This document shows, in pieces, positions 3,650 to 54,609 of a DNA stretch of 64,000 nt; position 1 is the first letter of the stretch; every line of letters starts with the position of its first letter. The position numbers and the translations under genes are program-made. The stretch is from Pelomyxa schiedti (taxonomy: Eukaryota > Protista > Evosea), in NCBI GenBank assembly GCA_020536535.1, contig JAHLWZ010000590.1, forward strand, positions 1-64,000, read 5' to 3'. The notes under the pieces are model-generated. The model was given only the letters and a program-made list of their open reading frames with translations. It was not told where the DNA came from and searched no databases.

Positions 3650-6600
3650 TTTTTGAGGGTGGTTAAAACTTGGTGAAGTCTTGAAGTGTCCTGTGCCGGT
3701 GCAAATAAACCCATAGCTTTTGGTCTGGATCAAAGCGAACACACGGGTCTCGTTCCGCATGCAGCCGATCCAATGCACCACTGACAATTGTGTTGATCTG
3801 AGTTTTCTGGATATTCTCTACCACGAACCTGAAGAAAAGGTAAGGGTGGGTTTCGCTGGAAAAAGCTGGGAGAAATACTGAGAGTCACTAAGTAGCATTG
3901 CAACGTCAGGGCGGGTTCCAACTCCCCCAGGGAGTCTAGCAGCCGCATCGCGTACTAAAGGAAGTATGTTGACAAAAGAGGGTCTATTAGACTTGAGCAT
4001 GAAGTGTTCTCGAGGCTTAAGAGAGGGATTTCCTGCACGATTCACTTGTTTGATTAGGTTTTCCGAAATGTGGTTGTTTTTTGGCATGTGAGATTACAAA
4101 AAAAAAAAAAAGTGTATGCACTCACCTGCCACTCTTTTCAAAGGTGCAACGACACTTTTGACCAATGGTAAGTTATACTGAAAAGCTTGCTCTGGAATTC
4201 GGTATCTCTCGGCTTCTTGGCGTCGGAACTCTTGAACAACATCTCCTGGAGTTGCCTCAATTGTCGGGCCACTTTTGCTCATGCGGGAAGATGAAATTTT
4301 GAGTTCCCTGAACTCACATTAAAATAACCAATGGCAGAGTCTTTTTGTACGATTTGTCTTCATTGAACATGTTTCTTGACAAAGCAAACCAGAACAGCTG
4401 TTCTAAAGACTGCAATTGTTCTTCTTTTTCCTTAGTCATCTGCGGTTGATATCGTCTCGTATCATTAAATGGAAAACGAGAATCGGGTGTTGCTAAACAA
4501 GCTTGAGAGGCCACAAACTGGAGAAAAGTAAAACCTTTTTCCAACCACTGCCAGTACCCAGTGTCCGAGTCATACCGCACGGCGGGCTGGAAGTGGCTCC
4601 CAGGAGTGATGGTGATGGATGGTGGATGTGCCAAAAATCCAAGTGCATATCGCAGAAAGAGACCTACATGGAGACTTGGCGGTATGTCACGTAGGATGAT
4701 ATCGTGTTTTTCAATACGTTGAGTGAGAGCTAAACAGAACTCAGAAACATTAAAAACGAGGCAAGGTACTCTCAAGTGTAACACTGAGACCCTGGGAAAA
4801 AAAGAGTGCTCGGAGTGTAGTAAATAGTACAAAAGCGGGTATATACTGTTGGTGTTATAATTTTGAAGAAAGCAAGTAATTACTTACATCTTAAAGGCAA
4901 CCAAAGGAAAAAGGAATGTATGGTTAATGAGATAAACTCTAATAAGACAGAAGTACCTCTCTTTCTGATATACCTTGAAAAGTGGTGTAAGTCATGTTTA
5001 TATTACCCCATAAGAATCTTACCCCGATAAATGTTGGTGATGTCTTTTGTGTTTTTTGTGGAACTCTTCCTCTATCTCACCGTCCTCGCCACCACTACTG
5101 GAACCAGTGTCCTCATTGTGTGTAGTGGGAAGCAGTGCCGTGTCCGTGAGGTTGTTTGGAATTCCCAATGATGAACGATAAAGAAGAATTTTGCCTGTTC
5201 TTTATGAGATTTTTTCCAGAAGGAAACGAAACGTTACTGATTAAATTAGCATTGTATTCTTTCATGGAGTGAATGTAACATTTGAACTTCAGTAGTCTAT
5301 ACTGCTTGCGGTATCTTTGGACCTCTGGTGCCAAGAAACCATCTATTATACAGTGAGCAGGGTGAAATTTTAATTCGTCTCGACTTCTTAAGTCACGTGT
5401 GAACTGGTGAACTGGGTTATTGAAGTGAAAAACTTCCCCAGCAAAAAGATTCTCCAATATCGTTGTCTGTGAAGTACTAACTTTTGGCAGGAGTTCCTGT
5501 TACAAAACCTTTACATAAAAAAAGAACAGTTGAACAAAATACTTGCAGAGAAGCACGTTGCTCTTCAGAAAGAATCGAGTTCCAGGTGTGCATGTTGAGA
5601 ACAGAGCTTAGATCTGCTAGTTTACAAAGGGCAAGAGGCAAAACTACAGTAATACCACATGCCTCAACTTCCTCCCATTTAGGAGCAGCATCTTTACTGA
5701 TTGCCTAGAGGTACTCAATGACTATGTAGTGCACCTGAGACCAATAGATACCTGTACAGGGAGTTCATCATCAGACAAGTCCTTGAGGTACCGGGAACGC
5801 AATGTCGCCGCTCTGTCAATGGTGAGTGCAAGAATAGCAAGAGAGTATGCATTACAACCTTCTGCAACGTTGTTCTGCTCTTTCTTCGTCTGCAGCTTCT
5901 TGTTGCTGTTTTCGTAATTGCTTAGCTTCTTCTTCTGCTAGGTGATGCTGCCTCAAAAGAAGTTGTTGCTGTTGCTGTTCTGCATTGACTTGTGGTGGGG
6001 GTGGAAGGGGTTGTGCTGCTTGTTGTGTATGAGATGCACCATGCCGACGCTTAGGAGCAGGTGCACAAGCATTTGAAGGTGTTGGGGGCTGTTGAATTTG
6101 TGGCGATGACTGTGTGATGGGTGATGGTTGAGCATACGAAGTCTGAATGGGTGAGTTAGGTCCGGAATGGCGTGATCTGTTTGCTGCAGACTGCGAGGAA
6201 ACTGGAGGGGGTGAATATGCTGGCGGGGGTGACGACAACTGAGTGGGTGAAGAGTAAACCTGCTGTGACTGCTGCATCACGGGGTACTGTTGGAATGCAC
6301 GTGTGTCGACGCTGGTATGCTGTGGCTGTTGCTGCTGTTGCTGGGATTGTAGCTGTAGTTGCAGAGGCGGAAGCTGCTGCACCGGTTGCCCATAGCCCGT
6401 CTGTTGCTGTTGCTGTTGAGGTTGTTGCTGCTGTGGTTGCTGTTGCCTCCTCTTTTTCTTCTTTTCCGTTGGAACGACCCCAGCGTACTGCTGCTGGTAC
6501 GCCGTAGCCGACGAGCACAAAGAAGCGGAATTAACAACCACAACGTTCCCGTGTGTGCTCTGCTGCCTCCCTCCGCCGCTGACGCCGCCGCTAATATCCG

Positions 6601-7423
6601 CACAGCCGCCGCCACCACCACCAAAAGAGGTATCAACCGAGTACGAAGCAGCACTCTGATTTGTCACATTCCCTCCTCCAGAGTTGCTGTTGATGTTGGT
6701 GATGGTGTTGGTACCACCCGCGCTCACATTCGTCATTTCCGTGAGGCTCCCTCCGCCGCCGTGGCCTGATGCCGCGTCCGCCGACGCGCCGTAGCTCGGC
6801 GTCGTGGTGGGAGGAGCGGCGAACGACGACGGGGACGACGAGACAGCGGCCGGGGGCGGCAGCGTGGCCGGCGGCATCATCGGTAGCCCCCCGCTCTGCG
6901 AGAGGGAGGACGGCGGGGGGAGGTAGTTGTAGGCAAACGCGCCGCCGCCCCCGCCGCCGCTGCTCGCGGGGCCGCCGCCGAGGTTCCCGAGGTACGGGGC
7001 GCTGCCGGCTCCTGGATGGGGCGGGGGGACGAGGTGCGGGTGCTCCTGGTCTCGGTACTGGTACTGCGGCTGCGGCTGGAGCTGGGCCTGCGGCTGAGAT
7101 CGGCGCGAGGAGGCGGACGCGGAGGGGGAGGAGGCCGACGACGAGGGGTTGCGGGACCGCTTGCGCTGCTGCTGCTGCTGCTGCGGCTGCTGCGCGACAG
7201 CGGGCGGGAAGGCAGATTGAGGCTGCTGCGTGGCTGGGGGATCGACGCGAGGTGTGTGTGGGTTTGCGGCGCTCGGGGTGTGGGTTGGTGTTGCTTTTGG
7301 CGCGGCCGGTTGAGGTGTTTGTTGTTGCTTTTTGTGGATTTGATTTCTCCTTTTGATCTCAACCGATGGACAAACCTCAGGAGCTCTCGAGTTCGAAAGA
7401 TAACTAGGGCCACGGTATAAGGG
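3650..7423 (-). CDS. NFRKB: NFRKB/INO80G-like protein: long Q/P/S-rich N-terminus, DEUBAD domain, winged-helix region (multi-exon; 3' end may extend toward about 2600)
   Basis: LFAGEVFHFNNPVHQF...DGFLAPEVQRYRKQY (DEUBAD-like); FRRQEAERY...REHFMLKSNRPSFVNILPLVRDAAARLPGGVGTRPDVAMLLSDSQY and GALDRLHAERDPCVRFDPDQKLWVYLHR match the conserved NFRKB segment. Confidence 0.85.
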
Positions 7424-7482
7424 CTAAAGGGAGTTTTTTCCTGCAGCGGCGCCCTCCATAATTTCCAAGAGTGATTGCAGAA

Positions 7483-9083
7483 ATGGCTGGTGATGGTGAA
7501 GAGTACAACAACGGACTGGACCCAACCGACGAGGATGACGCCGTAGGCATTTCACCCACCTCAAGTCAGTCTCCGCACGCAGCCAGGCTCAGGTCCCTCG
7601 TCGCCGAATTGGCCACTCTCGTTGCATCCTACCGAGAGCAGCGCGCCAGGGCACGTCAACAATTGCAAATGACGTCGCATCCAACTGCACCCTCCTCCGC
7701 ATCCACAACAACACCCGCACCTCCTCCAGCTGTCACTCAGAGCAGCGACACCGACAACGCAACCAACACCCTACCACAGCAACAAGATCCCAATCACACC
7801 AGACACGGGGCAGATCTCGTGGGCGGCGACATGGACCTGGAGGCAGAAGATTCCGAGGACGACGAAGACGACGAAGACGGAGACGACGTGGACCGAGTCG
7901 TCGGGGAGACCATGGGGACGATGAGGCAGTGCATGCAGTTCGTCGCGTTCGGGGCGGTGAGGCACTCGGACGCCGTGGAGCTGATGGAGAGGCTGGTGGA
8001 GACCGCGAGGCGGGCGGCGGGCTGGCCGCGGGTGCCCACGCGCGGCGGGCCCCCCGCCGGCTGCGTGCTCTACTTCAGGCACCCCGGGCAGGGCCGCCTG
8101 CGGACCAAGTGGGCGGACCCCGTCGAGTTCACGCAGGGCGGCATCCGCTGCGACGTCTGCAGCCGCGACTGGATACAGTGCTCCTACAGGGTGGTGCAGG
8201 GGGGCTCGGCGGGGCCCGAGGGGGGCAAGGGGGGAGGGGCGGGCGGGGCCCAGGAGAGGCAGCAGGAACAGGGGCAGGAGCAGGAGGAGGAGGAGGTGGA
8301 CACATCGAGCTACCATGTGGACAGGATTGGGTGGGATGTGTGCGCTGAGTGTGCTGTTGTGCACTGCTCTGGGTGGTTTGATGAGATTAGGTCGTGTGCA
8401 CAGTCTGCTGTTCTGGGGCCGGGAGGTTGTGTGCGTGCGATACCGTCGTACGCTGAGGAATACCAGCTCAGAGTTTCCGGTACAACATGTTGTGAGCTCG
8501 GAGTCACTTTGGTTGTGGAAGTATCGCAAGTGTGCATGCTGTTTTATTTTATTCCTTACGAAAGGAGTTAACCCAAACTCACAGACAGGCGAAAAGCTCA
8601 AGTGCATTGCAGTTCCTGAAGCCGAAGTCAGCTCCCCGAACACATGGCAATTTCAGAGGGCCTGTACAGTTCCTCTCGATGTTCCAACCTGCGGTAAAGA
8701 GGAGCGATGCCCGATATGCCTAGAACCGGTAGTTGGAGCGTCACTTAAAGTTGTTTTGACCGCATGTGGCCATTGGTTCCACGACCAGTGCGTCAGAAGG
8801 TATTTATCCGTATCAATTTAAGTAATTGATTATCCTCACACAAAACTTCAGGCATTTGCGCTCGCAGCGAAGTGCTTCCTGCCCAATGTGCCGATGTGAA
8901 AACGTGCTTCCACCCCGCAAGCACCCAACAGGGCAAGTAACACTGAACCTATCACACAGTCACACTGGCTGCCCATTGGATCCCGGAACCAAATACATTG
9001 CTGTTGTTGTGGTGTACACTGATGATTCACTTCCACTGCAGTCTGCTGCTGTGATTCTGTGCACACGAATATGTAAGCACTAA
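7483..9083 (+). CDS. RING-finger protein with acidic region and degenerate ZZ-like zinc finger (3' end approximate)
   Basis: ATG at 7483; CDVC...WDVCAEC; RING CPICLEP...ACGHWFHDQC and, after an intron, CPMC. Confidence 0.75.
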
Positions 9084-11563: not shown

Positions 11564-11969
11564 ACAGGTCTAAAATAAACAGAAATACATGTCCACTTTT
11601 TTTTTTTCCTTAAGTTAACCTTTACATAGTTTTCTGCCAGCCCATTGGGAAAATGTGACAAGTTACCCCGGTTGCTTGTGGGTGTAGAGATAACAGTCGA
11701 CTGATTGTTGTGCCGAGTGCATTTTCCACTTCCGTCGCCCCAGTTGTCGCTCCAAGTTGGTGTTGATACTGTTCGCATAATTCCCAATCCAATTTTCGCA
11801 AAAATTTTGGTTTTGCGCCAACCTTTTTAAGGACCAAAAAGGTGCGATTATTAAAAAAAATAAAAAAAGAAACCGGATGCGGAAGAAGTACCAGCTACAC
11901 CAGAAGGTGCGACACAGAAACTCAGAAACTCAGAATCACACGTGGCAAACAGGGTGCATCTGGATCAGC

Positions 11970-12075
11970 AAGGAGCATTTGGAGCAGTGCTTGGGAGTGC
12001 ATTTGAGAGCGGGTGGTGTGCATTTTTGGGAGCATTTGGAGCGGAGCGGAGCGGCGCATTTGGGAGCTGGGGGAG
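11970..12075. repeat. Imperfect short tandem repeats of a GCATTT(G/T)GGAGC-like unit
   Basis: Several visible copies of gcatttggagc, gcatttgagagc and gcatttgggagc. Confidence 0.5.
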
Positions 12076-12432
12076 TTTGGGTGGGTCTGGCAGCATCAGT
12101 CATTTTGGGGATAGCCAGCAGCAAAGCAAGCAAGCAGCATTTTGGGGGCATATAGAGTACAACAGAGGCTATTGTTACATTTGCAGCAAAAACACCCAAT
12201 ACAGGCGGGGGGTAGTTCCCTTCATCCCGTTGCGGCTGTAGTTGCTGGGGCAAAAAAACGGTTTTTGGTTCCTTTAAAATCAAAAACCAAGTAGGAACCC
12301 CGTTGCTGCCGAAGTTCGGCTCCCACAATTCATAAAGAGGAAAACGGTTGGAGGAAAAAGCCTGAAAGTAGAGATTTCCCTTCTGAGGGAAGCTCCCATG
12401 GTTCGCAAAACAACCAAACAGGGCTCCTAGTT

Positions 12433-12544
12433 CTAGACAGCCAATCTGGAGGTCAGGGTTCGATTCCCTGCCTGGGGAGAGATTGACGGTGGAAACTTCA
12501 ATGTCACACAACAGCAACCCCAGGTGGTGTAATGGTAGCACTCT
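12433..12544 (+). tRNA. trnG-GCC: Circularly permuted tRNA gene, Gly(GCC)-type; 3' half at 12433-12478 precedes 5' half at 12518-12544
   Basis: 5' half CCCCAGG-TG-GTGT-AATGGTA-GCAC-T (A box). 3' half CTAGA-CAGCCAA-TCTGG-AGGT-CAGGG-TTCGATT-CCCTG-CCTGGGG-A (B box). Acceptor 7/7, D 4/4, anticodon 5/5 and T 5/5 stems pair (G-U allowed); A15-U48 and U26-A44 are consistent; total 71 nt. Confidence 0.85.
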
Positions 12545-12594
12545 TCTAGGAGCACTTGGCTGCGCTTTCCCCCAACCTTCCCTCCTGCACGTCA

Positions 12595-12604
12595 TTTTTT
12601 TTTT
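12595..12604 (+). terminator. RNA polymerase III terminator (T10) downstream of the permuted tRNA
   Basis: First run of 4 or more T after the 5' half, about 50 nt downstream. Confidence 0.65.
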
Positions 12605-13327
12605 CCTCTCCAGAGAACCGGTTCTTAGAAATCAGCAACGCAACGCAATGCAATAACAACGAAACGAAAGAGCACAATAACTGCTACATCAACTAGTACA
12701 GCCAACACTAGCAGAACGCGAAGGACGGGAGTGGGTGGTTGCTTCACTGAAGCAACTCTTCGACCATCATTGGAGGGCACAAGCCACGCACCTAGGGCGA
12801 GTGCTTGATGATGGGTTCTCAGATCAAGAGTCAATAATTATTGGACAAAACAACCTAGAAGATCTAAAGAAAAGAAACCACAGTAAGCCGCGAATCCAAA
12901 AACATATAGACGCACGGCAATAAGGGGATTTCATTTATGGTGTAGCTTGAAGATAAATGCAAACCTTTACTGCCACCGAATGACTTGCCACGTTCCTTTT
13001 TTTTGTTAATGACCACGTTGCGTTTGATTTTGAGGTTCCTTGACAACTTGTAGCGCGCAACTTGTTGTTGTTGTGTAACTCTTGTGCGCGTTTCACAGTG
13101 GATTTCTTTTGATTTGTCGAGTTCCAATAAATCCTTGTTCGTTCTCAGAACCTCGTTGTGGAAAAAGAACAGAAAGGCCCGAGGAAGGTTCAAGGAACTT
13201 TCAGAAATACGCGTCATCTGTACTCCAAGGCCTTTTTAAGTGTCCTCGGCGTTTTGCACAACTTGTTGAAAAAACACTTCTGTCTAGGAACGCAACAAAA
13301 ATAAAAGCAAACAGAACATTCTATTCC

Positions 13328-14997
13328 ATGGCAACACAGATGTATGGAGACGTCGCAGCCATTACAGGAGAGGCACGCTTTGAGTGCGCAGACGCTGTGA
13401 CCGTGCGCATTGCTGCTGGTGAAGGACGCTGGTTGAACGTGGGTGTTCCAACTCTCCTTCTTTCGTTTTTGTTCTGTCAGTGCCGTGCTGTTGATTGATG
13501 TTTGTTGTTTTGTGTGCACACCCCACCCTTTGCCTTTTTTTTTCCCTTGTGTGTTGTAGTCTCTTCTGGAATTTAATCGTTGTCAACAATAACAGATTAT
13601 CAGTGCCACTTACGGAGGGGCAAATCCAAATAGGGATGTAACTGAAGCCATACGTAACCTCGTCGTCGACGAATCTTGGATCCATGTGGAAGGCGGAATT
13701 CACACCCGCATTGGAGACCCTGAACCAGGAGTTCCAAAGAGATTGGTCATTAATTACAAGTTCCTGCCCATTGAAAGTGAGATGAAAGTCTTCAGGTGCC
13801 ACGACGGTGAGACTGTAGACATTACTCCACCAGAAAACTATATCCTCCATGTACAAAGTTTCCAAAGAAACTCTCTTGAACTAACATGAACACCTCAGAT
13901 TCTCCATGCTACATATGGCGGGGGGTTTCCAAAGCGCCAAGTCACATCCAAAGTAGCTGCTCTGGTCACTGGTACTGGCATCCACGTCACTGGCGGCATA
14001 CATACACGCATTGGAGACCCTGAGCCAGGCGTTCCCAAGACTCTGGTAATTTTCTACAAGTTCGTGGTATCAAGGAAGAAGTTCTTGTTCTTCGGATGCG
14101 CAGATGCCGAGCCTGTTTGCATTGTTGCTCCATCTGGATATACACTCAATGTTAGCTGTTCCCTCCGTTTTTGTTTTTCCAATGTGCGATTCACTCACTC
14201 TGTCACAGGTCGTTGAGTCCACTTATGGAGGTGATGAACCAAATCGTGACGTTACGGCCTCAGTCCGAGCTTTGGTACACAATAGCACCGAGATTCGCGC
14301 CGAGCACGGGGGCATTCACCTTCTAATTGGAGACCCCGAGTTCGGCGTTCCCAAGACCTTCAACGTCACTTATAAATTCCTTCCTGATGGACGCTCCCAC
14401 GAGGAAATGGAATTCCACTGCGTCGACGGCGAACCAGTGCACATCCACGCGCCTCAAGGGAAGGGCCTCCAGGTACATTCATTCCTCGTTCTTCGTTTGG
14501 TGTCTCCAACAAACAACATGTACAGATCACCAACGCCACATATGGCGGAAACAATCCATCCCACGACGTCACTGACCTGGTATACGCCATCGTCCAGCAC
14601 AACGACTCCATTGATGTTGATGGTGGAATTCACACCCAAATTGGTGACCCAGAGCCCGGCGTTCCTAAGAAGTTCGTACTCCATTACAAGTTTGTAGCAC
14701 TGCCGCTAGAAGCAGCATTCACTTGCGGTGACTTTGAACCTGTTCACATTGCTGCCCCGCATGGCTATTCCCTTCAGGTTCACTTCCTTTGTTTCCTTTC
14801 CCTACGGTGACCCAAATCAGATTGCACGGGCAACCTATGGTGGGCACAATCCCCAGCGTGATGTCACTGATAAAGTGTCTGCACTGGTTTCTTCGGGGGC
14901 AATCAATGTTGATGGTGGAATTCATACCCAAATTGGGGACCCTGAGCCAGGAGTAGGCAAGAGGCTCGAAATTCTTTACGCATTCGTTCACTTATGA
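13328..14997 (+). CDS. Protein with five tandem cysteine-poor SUEL/Gal-lectin-like (DUF3395-like) repeats
   Basis: Five copies of ATYGG...DVT..V..LV....I.V.GGIH..IGDPEPGV.K...I.YKF, each preceded by F.C.DGEPV.I.AP.G..L. Introns lie at equivalent positions; stop TGA at 14995-14997. Start may lie further upstream. Confidence 0.75.
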
Positions 14998-15129
14998 AAA
15001 CACTATTGAAAGCACAACAAAAAGGATTTGTGTTGTCCCAACTCGTGCATTTATTTTCAGAGGCGTGGGTTTTAAATGGAAAGAGCAAAAAAAAATCTCC
15101 TACGTTTGAATCAAAATTTTTCTGTTTAC

Positions 15130-16783
15130 TATTACACAAAATAACGGGCACTCCAGTCCGGCTCTCTGAATATTGACCTCTCAGTTACCTTGCGGCACAC
15201 GCTGTCAAACACCGTCTCAGGGCTTGGAACATGCCTAATGATGTCATTCAGCAAGCCGAACTTGATTAGCTGGTGGGGATCAATGTTTTGTGCTCGAAAT
15301 ACACTCGTATCTCGTGAGAAATTAACACCAGGTCTCAGTCTAGCATACCTTAGATTGTTGGTTAGATTTGTATTTTGTATTTTGTATTTTACTGTGCGAA
15401 TATGGCACTAAATCTTGGAGGGCTGTCGGGCACTGCCGCAACGTAACGGACACATTCTTCCTGCAGTTCAGTATTTGTTGCTAAGATGTGTATACGTGGA
15501 GTAACACAGAAGTGATGTGCAAAGTGATAGACCTCTTTTGTCAAAAGAGATATTAGAGGGAAAAAGTTTTTGAATTGTGAGTGGAAATGATAGGGCTACC
15601 AGTTATTCCTACATGGTTTTCGGCGATAAGTTCATCAAGGTATTTCTGCACAGTAGGCAAATCTAAACCAGACATTGCAGAAATTTTTTTCACATGGTTC
15701 AGTCCGTCTGTAATGTAGGGAAGTAGTTGACGGACTGGCAGGGAAAAGGATTGAATGCTTTCCATAAGTTCCGTAGGTTTGAAACAAAATGGAATCTATT
15801 ACAGAAAAGAAGTGAGCGAAATCAAAAGAAAAGCAATCATGTAAAAGTAAAGCACACTTGTTCAAGGTACTGTGGCTGTATTTGAACTGGTTGAGCAAGT
15901 TTCAGTGTTGTTGGTGGTATTCCCCCAAGCTGCAGTGTACACACTCCGTTATTATTTAGTTCTTCTAAGACTTGATTTAGCAATCTACTCGTTTTGTTGG
16001 TTATCAAGGAGAGAACAATTCATTACTTGGGTAGTGTGGCCTTGGTATCTGCTTTCGACAAGAAGCTTGCATCCTGCTCAGCTTGGAGCAAGTAATTATT
16101 CAAAGTCTTCACAATGTCATCATATTGAACAGACTTGTCCCAAGGAACACAATCCGGCAGTACAAATATTACATTGAACAACAAAGCATTCCTTCCAAGA
16201 ATTAAAAACTGGAACAACTTCTCACACTACCCAAAAACCAAATAACTGGAACCAAAAAAAAAAAAAAAGTAAACAGTATATTACATAAGCAGGCCTACCA
16301 TCATGAATACATACGTATTTCAAGTAACAAACAAATGCGCCCCAAAACCAACCTGGAATACTTTGACTTGGCGATTAGAATAGGGAACCCAGTGAGCTTC
16401 CTGCCCCTCGTGTCGACGATGCCCACGTTGGTCCCGCACAGCGCGTCCTTGGGTATCACGTACTTTGACACGGCCATGAACTCGTCGCGGCTCATGAAGC
16501 CCTCGGGAGCCTGGTGCACAACCAGGGGCCCCAGTGCGTTGTCGAACTCGCAGTAGGCCACGCACGACAGCGTCCCGTAATACATGCCGCCCCCGCCGCC
16601 GCCGACGCCGACGCCCCCGCTGCCGCTGCGGCTCGCGCTCGCGCTCCCGCCACCCCCGCTCCCGTTGCTGTTACTGCGGCCGATGGCGGATGCCGGGCTG
16701 TTGCGGCTGCTGTTGGTGCTGGGAGACCGTGTCGTGGTGGTGGCTGTTGGTGTTGTGCTGGTTGAAAGGTCGGCGTCGTCCAT
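15130..16783 (-). CDS. NPRL2: GATOR1 subunit NPRL2/NPR2 (3' end approximate)
   Basis: YCEFDNALGPLVVHQAPEGF...SKYVIPKDALC...GFPILIAKSKYSRNALLFNVIFV; later LPYITDGLNHVKKIS and FGLLNDIIRHV. Confidence 0.9.
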
Positions 16784-16928
16784 CCGGATCGATTAATTCG
16801 AGGTTTGCACCGAAAAGTATCACGGACTGAACTGACTTGTGTGCTGCTGGCCGAAGAAAAACTCCAGACCACACAATGAAGTCATAGCTCTTAATGCCTC
16901 CCAGCATCTGAGAAGCAGGCGCACAGAA

Positions 16929-19751
16929 ATGGACTCCTCGGAATCAGGAGAAGGGTATCGGTGATTTTTCCCAACTTCTTCTGAAACATCAAGTGGCACC
17001 ACTAAAAAGGGGTGGATGGCGTCCACAACGAACTTGCCAGGCACTACGACGACACCTACTTCTGCGATCCACACTGGTGGCCGCCCACCGGTTTGTTCTG
17101 AACATCTTCTTATGCTCTCTTCTTTGGCTCATGTCGATTCACTGTGAATGTATCACAGACTTTTGTGTGCCACATCTGCGGGGGCGTACTCGTTGATCCC
17201 GTGACGTTTCCCGTGTGCCTCCACAGTGTGTGCCTCGTTTGTGCCGAGAAAAAGTTGGCCGGTGACCCTTCGCTCGGGGTAACTGGATGTTTGGTTTCTC
17301 CCTCCAAAAAAAACACATGTTCAGGAGATCGAGTGTGGATTCGGGTGTGGAACGGCACTCAAGTCGACGTCGCTGACTGTCAACGTGGACCTGAGATCGG
17401 TCATTGGTGGCGCAAGGCTCTTGTCGGATCATAGAACACAAACTCCAACGAACGGTGAGGGTGCACGTGGCACCAGAGAGGGGGACCTCTGCAGTCTGTG
17501 TAAAGTTAGGCCTGCATCATTCAAGTGTGAAACTTGTGGATTGGTTTGTATCTCTCTCTCTCTCTTTTTTTTTTTTTTTTTTTTCAGATTTTTAAAAGTC
17601 ATTTGTGTCCAGCTGTGCTCGAAACATTTGAACAAATTGCATTCAATGCCAGCATTCAAGGCACATGTAGTTGTTGACTTGGGAATAAGTTCTGTAGATA
17701 TCGGAGCCATCTCCCCCTCAAGGCACTGCATCCTCCACAAGAAAGAAATGGAACTGTTTTGCAAACAGTGCAATGAAATCATTTGTGAAAACTGTTGGGC
17801 TATTGGTGCTGTATGTTCCCCTCTTCTTCATTCTATGCAAATGATTGAATTGAGGATTAATTTAATAACCTGTAACTCACCCTTTTGTCACTCAGCATAG
17901 GAAACACGAGTGCATTGACATTTTTGAGGCGAGAAAGCTGCTTGTTCCACAAATTGGTTCGAAAAATGAAGCACTTCTTTCCAGTAGGAGGGCTGAATTG
18001 ATGGTCCGCATTGTTATTTGTTGTATTCCAGGCTCTAACCACTCTCAAAACTTTTTTTTTTTTGTTAGACTTTCAGGTCACAGCTGGAAACAATCAAGGG
18101 GGAAACAGAGTCAGAAGAAAGGAATAGATGCAATGTGATCAAAGATACTGTTTGTTACCGTTCTTGTCCCCATTTTTTTAACGTCTCAATCAAGATCACC
18201 CACTTGCACCAGTTATTGGAAGCAAAGCAGAAGGAACTATGCGACTTCGTTGAAAGGGAGCAACAAGTGAAAGTTCACAAATTAGAGGCGCAACGTAAAT
18301 CCATTAATGACCATATTTCAGTAGTTGAATGTGGCGTGTGTTATCCACCTGTCCTTCTTCCATTCTAAATATGATTGCAGATTTCATTTACTAATATGGC
18401 CAACCAAAGAGTGAGTGACAAAGATCCGTTTAGCTTTGTGAGTCTTGGAACTGTTGCCATACATGCAACGACCTTAGTGTCACAGTTCCCGAGTGGGAGT
18501 GCACTGGTTCCGAGTGCATCAGCGCGACTTGAAGAAGCGCCGCTTGACGGCAGTCACCTCGCGACAGCCATTAGGGACTTGACTCTTCTTCCGCCAGGTA
18601 TCTCCTAAAAACAGATACAGGCAATGTAACATAACCACAAATTAAATTAACAGCTGATGCATCACAAAGTAAGCTTGTGGAAGCTGATACAGGACCAATA
18701 TTCATCCGCAAAGATACGACTGTTGTCGCAACAATACAAACTTGTGACAAAACAGGGAAGCCTTCTGCGTACACGTCAGAACTCACCTGTTCTTGTAAGG
18801 TATTTTCCTTTTTTCCAATTTTGCCCCCTGCCCACTCTTAATATACAAACGCACTGCCAAATGAGTAAACAGGCTTTTTTAGGGACCTGGGAATGAAGTG
18901 CCAGCGAAAATTTGGGTTGTGGAGAATCCAGAGAATAAGGGATCAGGCCACCTGATAGTGAGAATGACCCCGTGTGAGCATGGTGACTACACACTCACGG
19001 CACAAATCAATAACACCCACATCGTTGGGTCGCCTCTGACCATTTTCGTTGCTGATACTAAATCGTGTGTTCCTTCCAATCCTCCAAAACACTAACAATG
19101 GTTCTCTTCCCTTCTTATAGAGCCTTCCCAGGCAGCAAGATACTCACAACACTCGAACTTGACAACAAGTTGCACGAGATGGTTGTTGATGCGGAGGGTG
19201 CCATGGGCCACAGGATGATAAATGCGAAGTGGCGGCTACTGTGGCGTGGATCAGACCACGGTTTCGCTGCTGCAAAGTTCCATGAACGGTGTGACAACGT
19301 AGCTCCAACAATCTCCATTATCACTGTATCACCAAATTGTATGTTTTCCTCACATAATGATTGATCCCAAGTACTAAAACACACAGATATATTTGGAGGA
19401 TACACAAACATTCCATATTGTAGCAGAGAGGGTGACATAGGAGGGTGTGGAGGACACACGTTTGTATACAGCCTTGTGTATTCCGGCACCAAAACAGGCA
19501 CAATCCAGAAATGCACCAACCACCGCTCATGCATCTACTTCCGCCCCGATTGGGGACCAACATATAATTGCAACGGCATCGACCTGGTCATTCATGACAA
19601 CTGCAACATACGTCCATTCAGCACCTCCGGCCTAGCGCTCAACAGTTGGGCTCAGCCGCCACCACCAAACGGCATTGACAAGTACGTTGCTGGCCTTCAC
19701 CGCTTCCTGGTATCTAACATAGAGGTCTGGACTCCTACTCAGAGAAGTTGA
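16929..19751 (+). CDS. TRIM-like protein: RING, B-box, B-box, coiled coil, filamin repeat, TLDc
   Basis: CHIC...CLHSVCLVC; CSLC...CETC..LCSKHLNKLH; CILHKKEMELFCKQCNEIICENC; GDYTLTAQINNTHIVGSPLTI (filamin); WRLLWRGSDHGFAAAKFHERCDNVAPT...WGPTY (TLDc). Confidence 0.82.
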
Positions 19752-20076
19752 GGGCACTACTCAAAAAAAAAAAAACAGAAAATGTTTGGCATTTTTTTTA
19801 TTATTGCTCAATACTAGAACTTTTTCTGATGAAGAAGCCAGGATCGTGCCACACGGAGACTGCTTGTAGATAATGTTCCTATAGCATGTTTTCCAAATCA
19901 AGAGAGAGCATCAGTCCACGATTGTGTGAGGGAAAAATGAAGCTAATCATTGCATAGTTGGCTTCCGCACCAGAGTCATTGGCAATGTAATAGTGGGATG
20001 TCAATGATAATACTTCACACACAGCAAAAAAGAGCATTGGCTGGCCCATGATGTTATTGGTTTGGCGCACCAAAAA

Positions 20077-20520
20077 TCAGAAGTCATTGTACAGCAGGTC
20101 GTACTTTGGAATCTTTGACGGGTCAATTGGGCACGTGACGACGACTTTGCCACGAGAAGCTCCCCTGTACACGACTTCGACGAGGTCGATGAAGTCCTGC
20201 TTCTCGCGGAACGCGCCGATGAACTTGGTGTGGTCGTGGGTCCCATAATCGCACTTGATGTGCCTGCCGTCGAAGAAGAAGATCGTCGCGGGGTGCAGCG
20301 TGATGTCGAAGTAGCGCGTGTACACGGGCACGGCGTCGACGTCGACGGCGTACAAGCACGCCATGCGCTGCAGCGGCCGCACGCAGCGCAGGAGGACGTC
20401 GTCGAGCATCATGCACGTCGCGTCGTCGGACTTGCCGAACCGAAGCACCACTACTTTGCCCGCGGTCCCCCGTATCACTTGGTCTATCTCCCTCTTGGTG
20501 GTCAAGGCCGGTAGCTCCAT
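20077..20520 (-). CDS. TXNL4B: Thioredoxin-like U5 snRNP Dim1-family protein, Dim2 type (single exon)
   Basis: Full-length 147 aa: [27 protein letters not shown]...[35 protein letters not shown]...[10 protein letters not shown]; the DHTKF and KYDLLY signatures are TXNL4B-type. Confidence 0.95.
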
Positions 20521-20857
20521 GTTGCTTTAACTTCAGATCAAAACTGATGAATCCCGGATTTGCTCCCTTGGGAGCAAGCAAAAAAAACGTCCCTCGCATT
20601 GCGTTCCTCGGCTCTAACAAAGATAAACCCGGAGTTGGACTAAGCTTCCATTTCCTCCCAAAGGCGAGGGATCCTCAGAAGAGCGTCAACCCTCTGTGAT
20701 GGCGGCATATTATTATACTCGGATCCAGCAAGCTTGCGTCTGCATTCTTGTTACGTCGCGGGTGCGACGCCATGTCTACTCGTAGCCATCTGTCTTTTCT
20801 TTAGAAGAAAACCGATTGTAAATTCCAAGTAGGGAAAACAAGGAATTTCTTTTGTAA

Positions 20858-23085: not shown

Positions 23086-23299
23086 AATACTGAACTGCAT
23101 TATTTTCTCTTTCAAATTAAAATTGTCGTCGTCCCTTCTTCGATGAGGGGTGTCGTTTCAAAGCGGTCACTTTGCACTTTTCCTGAAAATAATCAAAAAT
23201 GGACTGGACAACAACATCAACTTCAACGAAGTCATCGCCATTTGATTATTTTATGCAGCCATTTTGATAAGAATACATACGCAAGGGGTGAAACTGGCC

Positions 23300-25463
23300 T
23301 TAGAGAGCCTTCAGGGAAATATCCAGAGTGAAGTGGGGAGGGAGTTTCTTTTTTGGGTTAGAAGAGCAGAAGAACAGTGGCAATACCTTGTTTTTATCAC
23401 CCTTGTCAAGCTGTATCTTGCTGAAAGAGATGTGACCAACACCACTTCCGGGAACTATTATGAACATGGTGTTGAACCACAGTGCAAACAGCTGCTTCCG
23501 GCGGCTGCACCTCAGTACCTCCAGTTTGACATCGCCGGACACTTCAACTCCAGAACCTAATTGAACTTGATAGGGATGTTCAGGGGCTCCAGAGCCAGGA
23601 AGGCTACAAATGTTGTGTGCATCGTGTACTTTCTATTTCGAAGTGAGTTAATGCGTCGTAGATACCATTACAGCAACCTTTTTTAGCCTCTCTTTCTTAT
23701 AGTGGATAACAGAAGCCAAGTCATCGGTCAATGGTTTACTGGAATAAACCAGCTTACCGCAAGAAATCACCTTGATACACAAGTCTGATACCAAATTCAT
23801 GGGAATCAATAAGAAGAAAACTTGAAAATGTACCATTTTCATCTACGAATGGCTTGGGCGACATTGTTGCGCTTGTCAACACCAAAGTCACCTTCCTGTA
23901 GGCAAGATTTCTGGAGAGGAAATCAGCGTAATAGCCGACATATCGTATTTGGCTAGGAATTGTTACACCCTGTAATTACTAAGGAAGAAAAGACAGTTGG
24001 GGAGAATCGAACCTTGCTATCATATGTACGTTTTGCTGCAAAATAGGTCAGCGCTTCTTCTGCAGTGCTGCAGGTACCCGAGTGTAGGAGATATGCTGAA
24101 ACCATTAAGCCTGTCCGCCCCTTTGAAAATGAGCACTGTAGAATATGGGGAAGGAAAACCTTTCCAGCTTTACAGTGCACAACTGACACATTTTTTGGTG
24201 CTTTTTTAATCCAAATATCCTGAATAAATTAGATTTATACAAGGTAACACGGTTTTCGCAATATAAATTAAAATATGGGTGTATACACAAGATTGGCAGA
24301 ATTGATGTATTAACTCGAAACTGGGGCAATTGTGGTCATCAAAAGGGAAAACCTCCACTGAGGTAAATTAGGATCCTTATTTAACAGTATGCATGAACGC
24401 ACCACGATAGTTAAACTTCACAGGCTCATAACTTCGTTCTGAGCATCTGTATGATACTTGTAAATTCAATTCAAAAGTGAGAAGCTGGAGGCGGTACAAA
24501 TTATAAACTCTGTAGCTCGCTGGGTGCCTAGTTTCCAAAAATCTTAACCAGTGGTCAGGCACAGCATCAGTAAAAAGGATACAACTTGTATACTTCGCGG
24601 TAAGGGTTCCGGAAAGCTGCTTCAACAGACTCTGATGGAAATCCCATGGCAATTACTTTAGGGGTAATATCTGGAGAATAATTGAGATAAAACCGATGTG
24701 AATCCTTGATACATGACAAATCGAGATCAAAGCCGTCTTCTTGAAACCGCTTTTTCTTTTTTGAAACGGCTATGCGCAGCGCATTACTTGGAGAAGACAT
24801 GCAATTGTACTATGTGCACTCAGTATTGTAAGTTAAGGAGAGGACTACCATTGGTGTTCCCAATATTTCTAGTGCATTTGAAGTGCTTAGCTGACCAGAC
24901 AGCAAATCAGAAATCGCCCCAGTGCCAAAGCCAGTTGTTTTAGAATGTGCAGATGCACTAGACCCACTTGTGCTTATGGGTTCACCGCCACTGTTAGAAT
25001 TCTGGGGGCTACTTGTTCGTGGTAAGTAGTAAGTAGGTGTTCCACTAGCACCTCCATAAGGCGCCGACTGTGATGACGAAGTGTCACCTGTGTTATTGAC
25101 TGGAGGTGGAGAAGTCTGAGATAGTGGTGGTGTTAATATCGCCTGTTGTTGCGTTGCAAATGACTGAGGTGGTGCATTGTGTGATTGAATCCCAGTCGAA
25201 TTCGGGGGTTGTGAGTAGACAAAATGTTGTTGCTGCTGCTGGCAGTTTGGGGGCGCCTGTGTGCCAGTAAAGGTTGTTGCAGTAGTGGTGGGATAGAGTT
25301 GTGGGTAGAGTTGTGGCCTGGGTTGTTGCGAATTCAAAGAGTTCGGTTGAACTTGCAGCTGATAGGAGTTGTAGGACATAGCAAGAGTTTGTTGTTGTGG
25401 GGCTGTGAACATTGGTGATTGCTGCCCGTACCAGTACGTTGGCTGCTGGGTGTTGTTGGACAT
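23300..25463 (-). CDS. PTEN: PTEN lipid/protein phosphatase with C2 domain and an inferred Q/S/T-rich N-terminal extension
   Basis: [61 protein letters not shown]; C2 region VSGDVKLEV...LWFNTMFI...[10 protein letters not shown] 39-nt GT-AG intron (24848-24810) joins the upstream low-complexity exon in frame. Confidence 0.9.
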
Positions 25464-25873
25464 TTTGTGGGCGGATTGATTGTTACCCGAAAAGCCAGAG
25501 TGCAGTGCACAACTCGGAACGAAAAAGACAAGGAGCAACCTTTTAGATTGTTGAAAATTGTTTCTTTTTTTTCCTTTAACCTCCCACAAACCAAAAAAAT
25601 AATAACGAAATAAAGAAAGAGCTCTATACAGGGCAAGGAGTCAGTCAGTTAAAGGAAAAAAAAGAAACAATTTTCAACAATCTAAACACATGCTAACCTG
25701 TGGATCAGGGATCCGCTGAGAGGTGACACGTGTTTGCACAACAGACCCCCAACATCCAACAGAAGATCTACGGCGTTCGTGCAGCGAGAGTCTCTGCTAT
25801 ATTTGAACACCCGCTGCAGTTCGTCCCCTCTCCTTGTTGTGTTAATCTTCGCTGTGGCGAAGTTTTTATCTTC

Positions 25874-52661: not shown

Positions 52662-54609
<1,948 letters not shown>

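Follow-up and report, generated by a model that had tools for sequence, protein, structure and literature searches.

A tRNA-like gene in permuted order, present in two copies on one scaffold of the amoebozoan Pelomyxa schiedti

We analysed a 64,000-nt window of Pelomyxa schiedti DNA, positions 1-64000 of scaffold JAHLWZ010000590.1 (GCA_020536535.1), and window and scaffold coordinates are thus the same. At 12433-12542, the 3' part of a tRNA-like gene stands before its 5' part, and an equally permuted second copy lies further along the scaffold. We give about an even chance to the reading that this is a real circularly permuted tRNA-like gene of P. schiedti, in two copies on one scaffold, whose RNA ends would be trimmed and ligated; the RNA steps are proposed by analogy with known permuted genes.

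The 3' part before the 5' part

Reading the sequence at 12200-12850, we found the plus-strand order to be leader, tRNA 3' part, 39-nt spacer, tRNA 5' part, trailer and a run of ten T (T10). The 3' part, spacer and 5' part together form a permuted unit of 110 nt, and the predicted precursor unit covers 12385-12604. Every element quoted in an initial annotation of this DNA is present at its position, with the 3' part ahead of the 5' part, and the terminator it had placed downstream is the T10 run, which a 52-nt trailer separates from the 5' part. The parts of the locus are as follows.

12385-12418, plus strand: distal leader; GAGGGAAG (12385-12392) can pair with CTTCCCTC (12577-12584), with extra pairs from 12400-12401 and 12404-12407; it may also be the seat of promoter elements
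12419-12430, plus strand: proximal leader strand of a 12-bp helix, CAGG-GCTCCTAG, with GCTCCTAG at 12423-12430
12431-12432, plus strand: TT, leader side of the 2x3-nt internal loop at the junction in the model structure
12433-12478, plus strand: tRNA 3' part, positions 27-73 (from the sequence, ARAGORN on the swapped order and a permuted-core scan)
12433-12449, plus strand: anticodon arm CTAGA/CAGCCAA/TCTGG, whose loop CAGCCAA holds A33 (12439) and the anticodon GCC (12440-12442)
12450-12453, plus strand: variable loop AGGT, from the sequence
12454-12470, plus strand: T arm and B box, CAGGG/TTCGATT/CCCTG, from the sequence
12471-12477, plus strand: acceptor 3' strand CCTGGGG, with the discriminator A at 12478
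12479-12517, plus strand: intervening spacer of 39 nt, without a T run, predicted to close the acceptor stem in the precursor
12518-12542, plus strand: tRNA 5' part, positions 1-26 (from the sequence, ARAGORN on the swapped order and the permuted-core scan)
12518-12524, plus strand: acceptor 5' strand CCCCAGG, followed by U8 and G9
up to 12542, plus strand: D arm and A box, GTGT/AATGGTA/GCAC, then T26, from the sequence
12543-12545, plus strand: CTT, trailer side of the internal loop at the junction in the model structure
12546-12558, plus strand: proximal trailer strand of the 12-bp helix, CTAGGAGC-A-CTTG, with CTAGGAGC at 12546-12553 and A12554 bulged
12559-12594, plus strand: distal trailer, including CTTCCCTC (12577-12584), which can pair with 12385-12392
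12595-12604, plus strand: T10 run, an RNA polymerase III (Pol III)-type terminator and the sole run of at least four T within 12385-12604

When 12518-12542 is joined ahead of 12433-12478, the resulting 71 nt are called by ARAGORN as tRNA-Gly(GCC) with four intact stems, in agreement with the 71-nt cloverleaf that the initial annotation had obtained by swapping the halves. All of its stem pairs (21/21) are Watson-Crick or G-U, and it has U8, A14, R15:Y48, G18 and G19, A21, G53, T54, T55 and C56, A58, and C61. Universal tRNA nucleotides are intact at 11 of 12 positions, the exception being U33, which is replaced by A33 in both copies. The tertiary pairs proposed earlier (A15-U48, U26-A44, G18-U55 and G19-C56) can all be read in the sequence. 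In the native order, ARAGORN and Rfam returned no tRNA in the whole window, and a permissive Rfam search of the locus detected a bare T hairpin alone.

The permuted arrangement is not a chance match. We scanned for a permuted core, defined as a T arm (G53:C61, TTCRANN loop) with a fully complementary acceptor 1-100 nt downstream and U8 plus a D arm (A14, GG); this was the one site in the window that qualified, and 300 dinucleotide-preserving shuffles produced no hit, while T-arm-like sites alone occurred at a mean of 0.24 per shuffle.

The 39-nt spacer has no terminator T run, as within 12385-12604 only T10 reaches at least four T, and CCA is unencoded, with A73 followed by GAG in the window and by CAG in the second copy. 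A downstream T stretch and an unencoded CCA are traits of eukaryotic permuted genes (PMC3978253). A B-box-like sequence, GGTTCGCAAAAC, lies at 12400-12411, 57 nt upstream of the real B box, and is unchanged in the second copy; a role in the promoter and a relic are both conceivable.

The host was expected to be non-algal and amoeba-like, and it is Pelomyxa schiedti, an anaerobic archamoeba (Archamoebae, Amoebozoa). Pfam matches to homeodomain, YEATS, Sel1 and protein kinase families identify the window as eukaryotic nuclear DNA, and a complete Dim1/TXNL4B open reading frame (ORF) at 20077-20520 on the minus strand is 98% identical to thioredoxin 4B of Pelomyxa schiedti, the next best match reaching at most 65%; a search with the Sel1-repeat ORF gave no identification of the host. 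Over the 20.6 kb compared, the window and the scaffold record are identical, with 9879-30520 of the record at the same coordinates in the window.

Leader-trailer complementarity and the second copy

The leader and the trailer of the locus are complementary, a feature absent from the initial annotation. GCTCCTAG (12423-12430) is the exact reverse complement of CTAGGAGC (12546-12553), forming an 8-nt inverted repeat 2-3 nt from the junction, and with CAGG:CTTG the helix extends to 12 bp with one bulged A (A12554). This 12-bp helix is present in every minimum free energy (MFE) fold of the two copies, and the model precursor consists of five helices in which 33/33 pairs are canonical. A longer precursor fold adds GAGGGAAG:CTTCCCTC and intermediate pairs, giving 26 intermolecular pairs and -34.6 kcal/mol (duplexfold). 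This energy was matched by 9/2000 shuffles and by 17/632 genomic controls of the same geometry; the outer leader-trailer pairing by itself is marginal (p about 0.045).

In the model structure, the helix would bring tRNA positions 26 and 27 together across the 2x3-nt internal loop (TT / CTT). The junction is ambiguous between 25/26 and 28/29 because TCT stands at both ends, and cuts at 25/26, 26/27, 27/28 or 28/29 give an identical mature sequence.

Several short repeats were observed around the junction. A 6-nt direct repeat, TTCTAG, at 12431-12436 and 12544-12549 brackets a unit of 113 nt, and CTAG occurs three times (12427, 12433 and 12546); since CTAG is self-complementary, the trailer can alternatively pair with the leader or with the 5' strand of the anticodon stem. 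Just upstream of the unit, a hairpin, TTCCCT-TCTG-AGGGAA, lies at 12377-12392, and the second copy keeps its stem with 3 of 4 loop bases changed (GACG). The hairpin and the trailer pairing compete, because the 3' strand of the hairpin overlaps the segment that pairs with 12577-12584.

The second copy of the permuted unit occupies 83406-83515 of the record, on the same strand and scaffold and 71 kb away (extended unit at about 83.36-83.58 kb). It has the same permuted arrangement, and its swapped halves are again called tRNA-Gly(GCC) by ARAGORN. It sits in the second copy of an 8.6-kb block, within 81-101 kb of the scaffold. The duplicated block is a mosaic: 13300-20300 is 100% identical between the copies, and 11951-13250, which holds the unit, has 4.9% substitutions and many indels. 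Substitutions between the two copies are distributed over the locus as follows.

Upstream of 12385, 55 nt: 10 substitutions
Distal leader, 12385-12418, 34 nt: 0 substitutions
Leader helix and loop, 14 nt: 0 substitutions
3' part, 46 nt: 1 substitution
Spacer, 39 nt: 5 substitutions
5' part, 25 nt: 0 substitutions
Trailer, 52 nt: 0 substitutions
T10, 10 nt: 0 substitutions

The single change in the 3' part, at T-loop position 59 (12464), replaces T by A and leaves a canonical B box in either copy; the five changes in the spacer show no compensatory pattern. The unit minus its spacer has 1 substitution in 147 nt, compared with 60 in 1109 nt for the rest of the block (Fisher p = 0.004), and it also differs from the spacer (p = 0.002). 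Identical runs open at 12385, where the outer helix starts, and close at 12604, where T10 ends. The comparison is suggestive and fits purifying selection without proving it.

The block itself can be described as a direct segmental or haplotig duplication, in which window positions 11951-20524 and 23262-25569 correspond to 81-101 kb of the record, with a 7-kb core of 100% identity, flanks about 5% diverged and rich in indels, and another block in which the copies are 94% identical. Such a pattern points to recent gene conversion or assembly duplication. Elsewhere in the window, there are T homopolymers of 76 nt (249-324) and 112 nt (53386-53497) and a 100-N gap (700-799); the 112-nt run falls within long mechanical ORFs, beside an ORF that encodes a homeodomain (53278-54609). 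The long T runs are possibly real low-complexity DNA or artefacts of amplification or assembly. A GC-rich island at 6000-8600 (61% GC, compared with an average of 47%) has overlapping long ORFs in several frames, with low-complexity translations rich in Q, P, S and T.

No conventional tRNA gene was found in about 85 kb of scaffold JAHLWZ010000590.1, and the genome paper of P. schiedti never mentions tRNAs. The intron mode of ARAGORN called a tRNA-Val(CAC) with a 1959-nt intron at 81398-83452 of the record, which we rejected as a false positive; it is built from the permuted T arm and acceptor of the second copy plus an unrelated upstream fragment, and it illustrates the risk of mis-annotation for permuted genes.

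Relatives of the locus were sought in other sequences. The exact 5' half had no match in metagenomes, and the 3' half had none in 185,579 prokaryote genomes. A search with the B-box/gap/D-arm pattern returned 120 loci; those in which ARAGORN called two genes were ordinary adjacent bacterial tRNAs (mostly Thr>Gln and Gln>Gln), and none of the remaining loci, with no or one ARAGORN call, looked permuted on inspection. True tandem tRNA pairs in metagenomes appear to ARAGORN as two complete genes. Four metagenome loci (L014, L020, L070 and L113) have the D-arm sequence TGGTGTAATGGTAGCAC downstream of a B box and no ARAGORN tRNA; they may be unusual, intron-containing or degenerate tRNA genes of unrelated organisms. 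No independent assembly, sought through unspliced ORFs, is on record.

Proposed maturation and its alternatives

The locus would probably mature by end joining, as in known permuted genes. A single Pol III-type precursor would run through leader, 3' part, spacer, 5' part and trailer and stop at T10. Its leader and trailer would zip into the 12-bp helix, extendable to about 26 bp, and so place nucleotide 26 beside nucleotide 27. Leader and trailer would then be cut away at the junction, with the last leader nucleotides coming off at TT (12431-12432), and ligation of the ends would close a circle of 110 nt. Excision of the spacer at the acceptor stem by RNase P and tRNase Z would open this circle again, and CCA addition would follow; the predicted product is a 71-nt tRNA with the anticodon GCC. 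We infer transcription, cutting, ligation, circularisation and aminoacylation from the cases of Cyanidioschyzon and Ostreococcus, and a route through a circular intermediate has been demonstrated in Cyanidioschyzon and green algae. A more specific reading, tentative and in our view less likely than not, is a functional permuted tRNA in P. schiedti whose joining would be guided by the duplex and proceed without a bulge-helix-bulge (BHB) motif, and which might be a specialised or mis-assigning decoder of GGY codons and not a standard tRNA-Gly.

A number of observations weigh against the main reading, a real permuted gene whose RNA ends are joined. There is no clear TATA element close upstream of the unit; the nearest TATA-like candidate, CATAAAG at 12331-12337, is about 88 nt ahead of the leader helix as compared with a criterion of about 50 bp, and it is kept in the second copy. 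The permuted order also puts the B box ahead of the A box. The known permutation junctions are 15/16, 20/21, 37/38, 50/51 and 59/60 (PMC3978253), and the 26/27 junction (25/26 to 28/29) fits none of these types. The BHB is described as the dominant recognition element of the splicing endonuclease. By its published definition, bulges of 3 nt border a central helix of 4 bp, the outer helices are longer than 2 bp, and hBH and HBh' count as relaxed variants; an exhaustive two-strand search of the locus found neither the strict nor a relaxed form whose bulges fall where the cuts are required. In the model, a 2x3-nt loop, at best of the 'no H' class, separates the leader-trailer helix from the tRNA body at the junction, and because no BHB motif is present, cutting would need a relaxed 'no H' mode of the splicing endonuclease or a different nuclease.

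The copy comparison and the identity of the product raise further difficulties for it. Differences between the copies are clustered throughout the block, which has unrelated identical runs of 116, 106 and 85 nt, and the two runs that cover the unit, of 103 and 79 nt, come only third and fifth in the block. The 71 tRNA nucleotides alone have 1 substitution where about 3.5 are expected, which is not significant. Gene conversion, evidently active in the block, could mimic constraint, given this clustering, the unrelated identical runs of 85-116 nt and the 7-kb stretch of 100% identity. The anticodon loop reads C-A-GCC-A-A, with A at position 33; U33 is almost universally conserved, and A33 or G33 is known mainly from rare natural mistranslating tRNAs (PMC11415595). 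The cytosolic tRNA-Gly set comprises G1-C72, C2-G71, G3-C70, A73, C35, C36 and the (G10-Y25):G45 triple (PMC9976931), and pairs 2-71 and 3-70 are important in yeast tRNA-Gly. The acceptor stem here opens with C1-G72, C2-G71 and C3-G70 and departs from this consensus: C2-G71, A73, C35, C36 and G10-C25:G45 are present, and G1-C72 and G3-C70 are absent. The D arm is of the type found in tRNA-Gln and bacterial tRNA-Gly(UCC). A33, C1-G72, C3-G70, the missing BHB and the 52 nt between the 5' part and T10 do not figure in the initial annotation. The anticodon indicates glycine, and the charging identity is uncertain because C1-G72 and C3-G70 depart from the tRNA-Gly consensus.

Some of the same observations favour the reading that the unit is a neutral relic, made in one step from a normal tRNA gene, copied with the segmental duplication and left unprocessed, which we consider less likely, though a serious rival. 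Such a relic could go back to an intron-containing precursor, circularised or read through, that was reverse-transcribed and integrated, or to a single unit of a tandem tRNA array that was excised and inserted again. On this view, A33 and the acceptor stem, which is unlike that of tRNA-Gly, could be decay mutations, the BHB motif is lacking, the TTCTAG repeat at both boundaries could be a junction or target-site signature, and the constraint signal is weak given the clustered differences. The leader-trailer helix, too, is exactly what the reverse-transcription model in the literature predicts, in which it descends from an intron stem. However, all stems and 11/12 universal nucleotides are intact, substitutions between the copies spare the halves, leader and trailer and fall in the spacer, and the identical runs start and end at the predicted edges of the unit (12385 and 12604). 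A one-step origin from an intron-containing gene also requires an intron near tRNA position 26/27, and we know of none in Amoebozoa. The origin favoured in the literature, in which an intron-containing gene is duplicated in tandem and its outer exons are then lost, should leave decayed halves on either side of the unit. When the flanks were aligned, locally and semi-globally, with the missing 5' and 3' halves, the results were no better than those of shuffles (p = 0.09, 0.54, 0.76 and 0.96). We also rejected a candidate decayed duplicate in the trailer, TTCCCTCCTG, which resembles a T arm and acceptor at the right spacing and whose alignments were no better than shuffles or genomic controls. 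The concern that the halves belong to two separate degenerate tRNA copies thus finds no counterpart in flanks that hold no recognisable decayed halves. Undetectable flanking halves imply either that decay is complete, with long selective maintenance of the inner halves, or that the origin was a one-step event, of which the TTCTAG repeat may be a trace; the repeat may equally be a by-product of the palindromic CTAG in the helix and the anticodon stem.

The length of the duplex bears on another alternative, namely that the RNA is functional and stays unligated as a two-piece tRNA-like molecule, perhaps with a non-translational role. Cleavage at the acceptor stem by RNase P and tRNase Z would then yield two pieces, leader plus 3' part and 5' part plus trailer, held together by the acceptor stem and the leader-trailer duplex. 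The 48-nt leader and 52-nt trailer have no substitutions where about 5 are expected, which exceeds what a discarded flank needs; a duplex of 26 bp at -34.6 kcal/mol is long, a BHB for cutting and joining is lacking, and in the literature permuted rRNA (ribosomal RNA) and tmRNA (transfer-messenger RNA) genes function in two-piece form. On the other hand, no translating tRNA is known to have an extra helix emerging at 26/27, the outer pairing of the duplex exceeds chance by a narrow margin, and conservation of leader and trailer may reflect gene conversion; we regard the two-piece model as improbable. An artefact is far less credible still. The genome was obtained from single cells amplified by multiple displacement amplification (MDA) and assembled by SPAdes with k up to 121-127, and the unit could in principle be an MDA chimera or a collapsed tandem tRNA array. 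The 100-N gap and the 7-kb stretch of 100% identity between the duplicates mean that some assembly duplication is possible. Yet the arrangement is common to two copies that differ by about 5% locally, inside the unit too; one permuted unit between unique flanks should, from the assembly k, need spanning reads; and a collapsed array cannot explain the unit because the k-mer (121-127) is longer than the 110-nt unit. Nor would a random chimera make a flanking 12-bp helix or a correctly placed terminator. The early concern about misassembly of a normal tRNA is largely answered by the diverged second copy and by k exceeding the unit length.

Comparison with known permuted and split tRNA genes

Permuted tRNA genes were reported by Soma in 2007, Maruyama in 2010 and Chan in 2011. 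Such genes occur in Cyanidioschyzon merolae, the prasinophytes Ostreococcus and Micromonas, the Bigelowiella natans nucleomorph, Auxenochlorella and Thermofilum pendens (PMC3978253), and a 2026 review describes them as rare exceptions of certain unicellular algae. In our full-text literature searches, every report of such a gene came from algae, a nucleomorph or Thermofilum, consistent with the initial annotation, whose authoring model knew of no amoebozoan case. The P. schiedti locus resembles the algal and Thermofilum genes in its same-strand 3'-before-5' order, a 39-nt spacer within their range of 1-74 nt (PMC3978253), a cloverleaf after swapping that is canonical apart from A33, complementary leader and trailer, an unencoded CCA, and a T stretch downstream with none in the spacer. 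It differs from them in belonging to a heterotrophic anaerobic amoebozoan without algal ancestry, and in its 26/27 junction, the missing BHB, an unusually long leader-trailer duplex and A33; its expression is predicted.

The processing site has a parallel in the tRNA-Ser(TGA) of Ostreococcus lucimarinus, which has a non-canonical intron at 27/28 with a 'no H' motif (Table 1, PMC3978253). Both have essentially the same site in the cloverleaf and no central 4-bp helix; there, however, the site belongs to an intron in a gene permuted at 37/38, while here positions 26-28 are the permutation junction itself. As in the split tRNAs of Nanoarchaeum equitans and Caldivirga, a long duplex outside the tRNA body would unite both parts, although those tRNAs come from separate transcripts joined at a BHB, whereas one permuted transcript without a BHB is predicted here. 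Like two-piece tmRNA and rRNA from permuted genes, the P. schiedti RNA might work unligated, but those are other RNA families, and we know of no two-piece cytosolic tRNA. Finally, the rare non-U33 nucleotide and a body that does not match the usual identity set of the anticodon are shared with tRNA-ProX and Candida tRNA-Ser(CAG) (PMC11415595), both of which have the normal gene order.

Permuted tRNA genes have so far passed for an oddity of a few algae, a nucleomorph and a single crenarchaeon, and have been tied to BHB motifs and to splicing endonucleases of relaxed specificity. If the locus is functional, a gene from an amoebozoan that is opened at 26/27 and lacks a BHB would be new among permuted tRNA genes; should the tentative proposal of a duplex-guided permuted tRNA hold, it would be the first permuted tRNA from a eukaryote that is not photosynthetic, and no earlier one would have its junction at the hinge between the D stem and the anticodon stem. 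Even as a relic, the unit would offer models of the origin of permuted RNA genes a clean natural intermediate. A functional gene would mean that the permuted arrangement arises independently of algal ancestry, that the cloverleaf can open at a new position, that end joining may not need a BHB, and that standard tRNA scanners under-count the tRNA genes in protist genomes.

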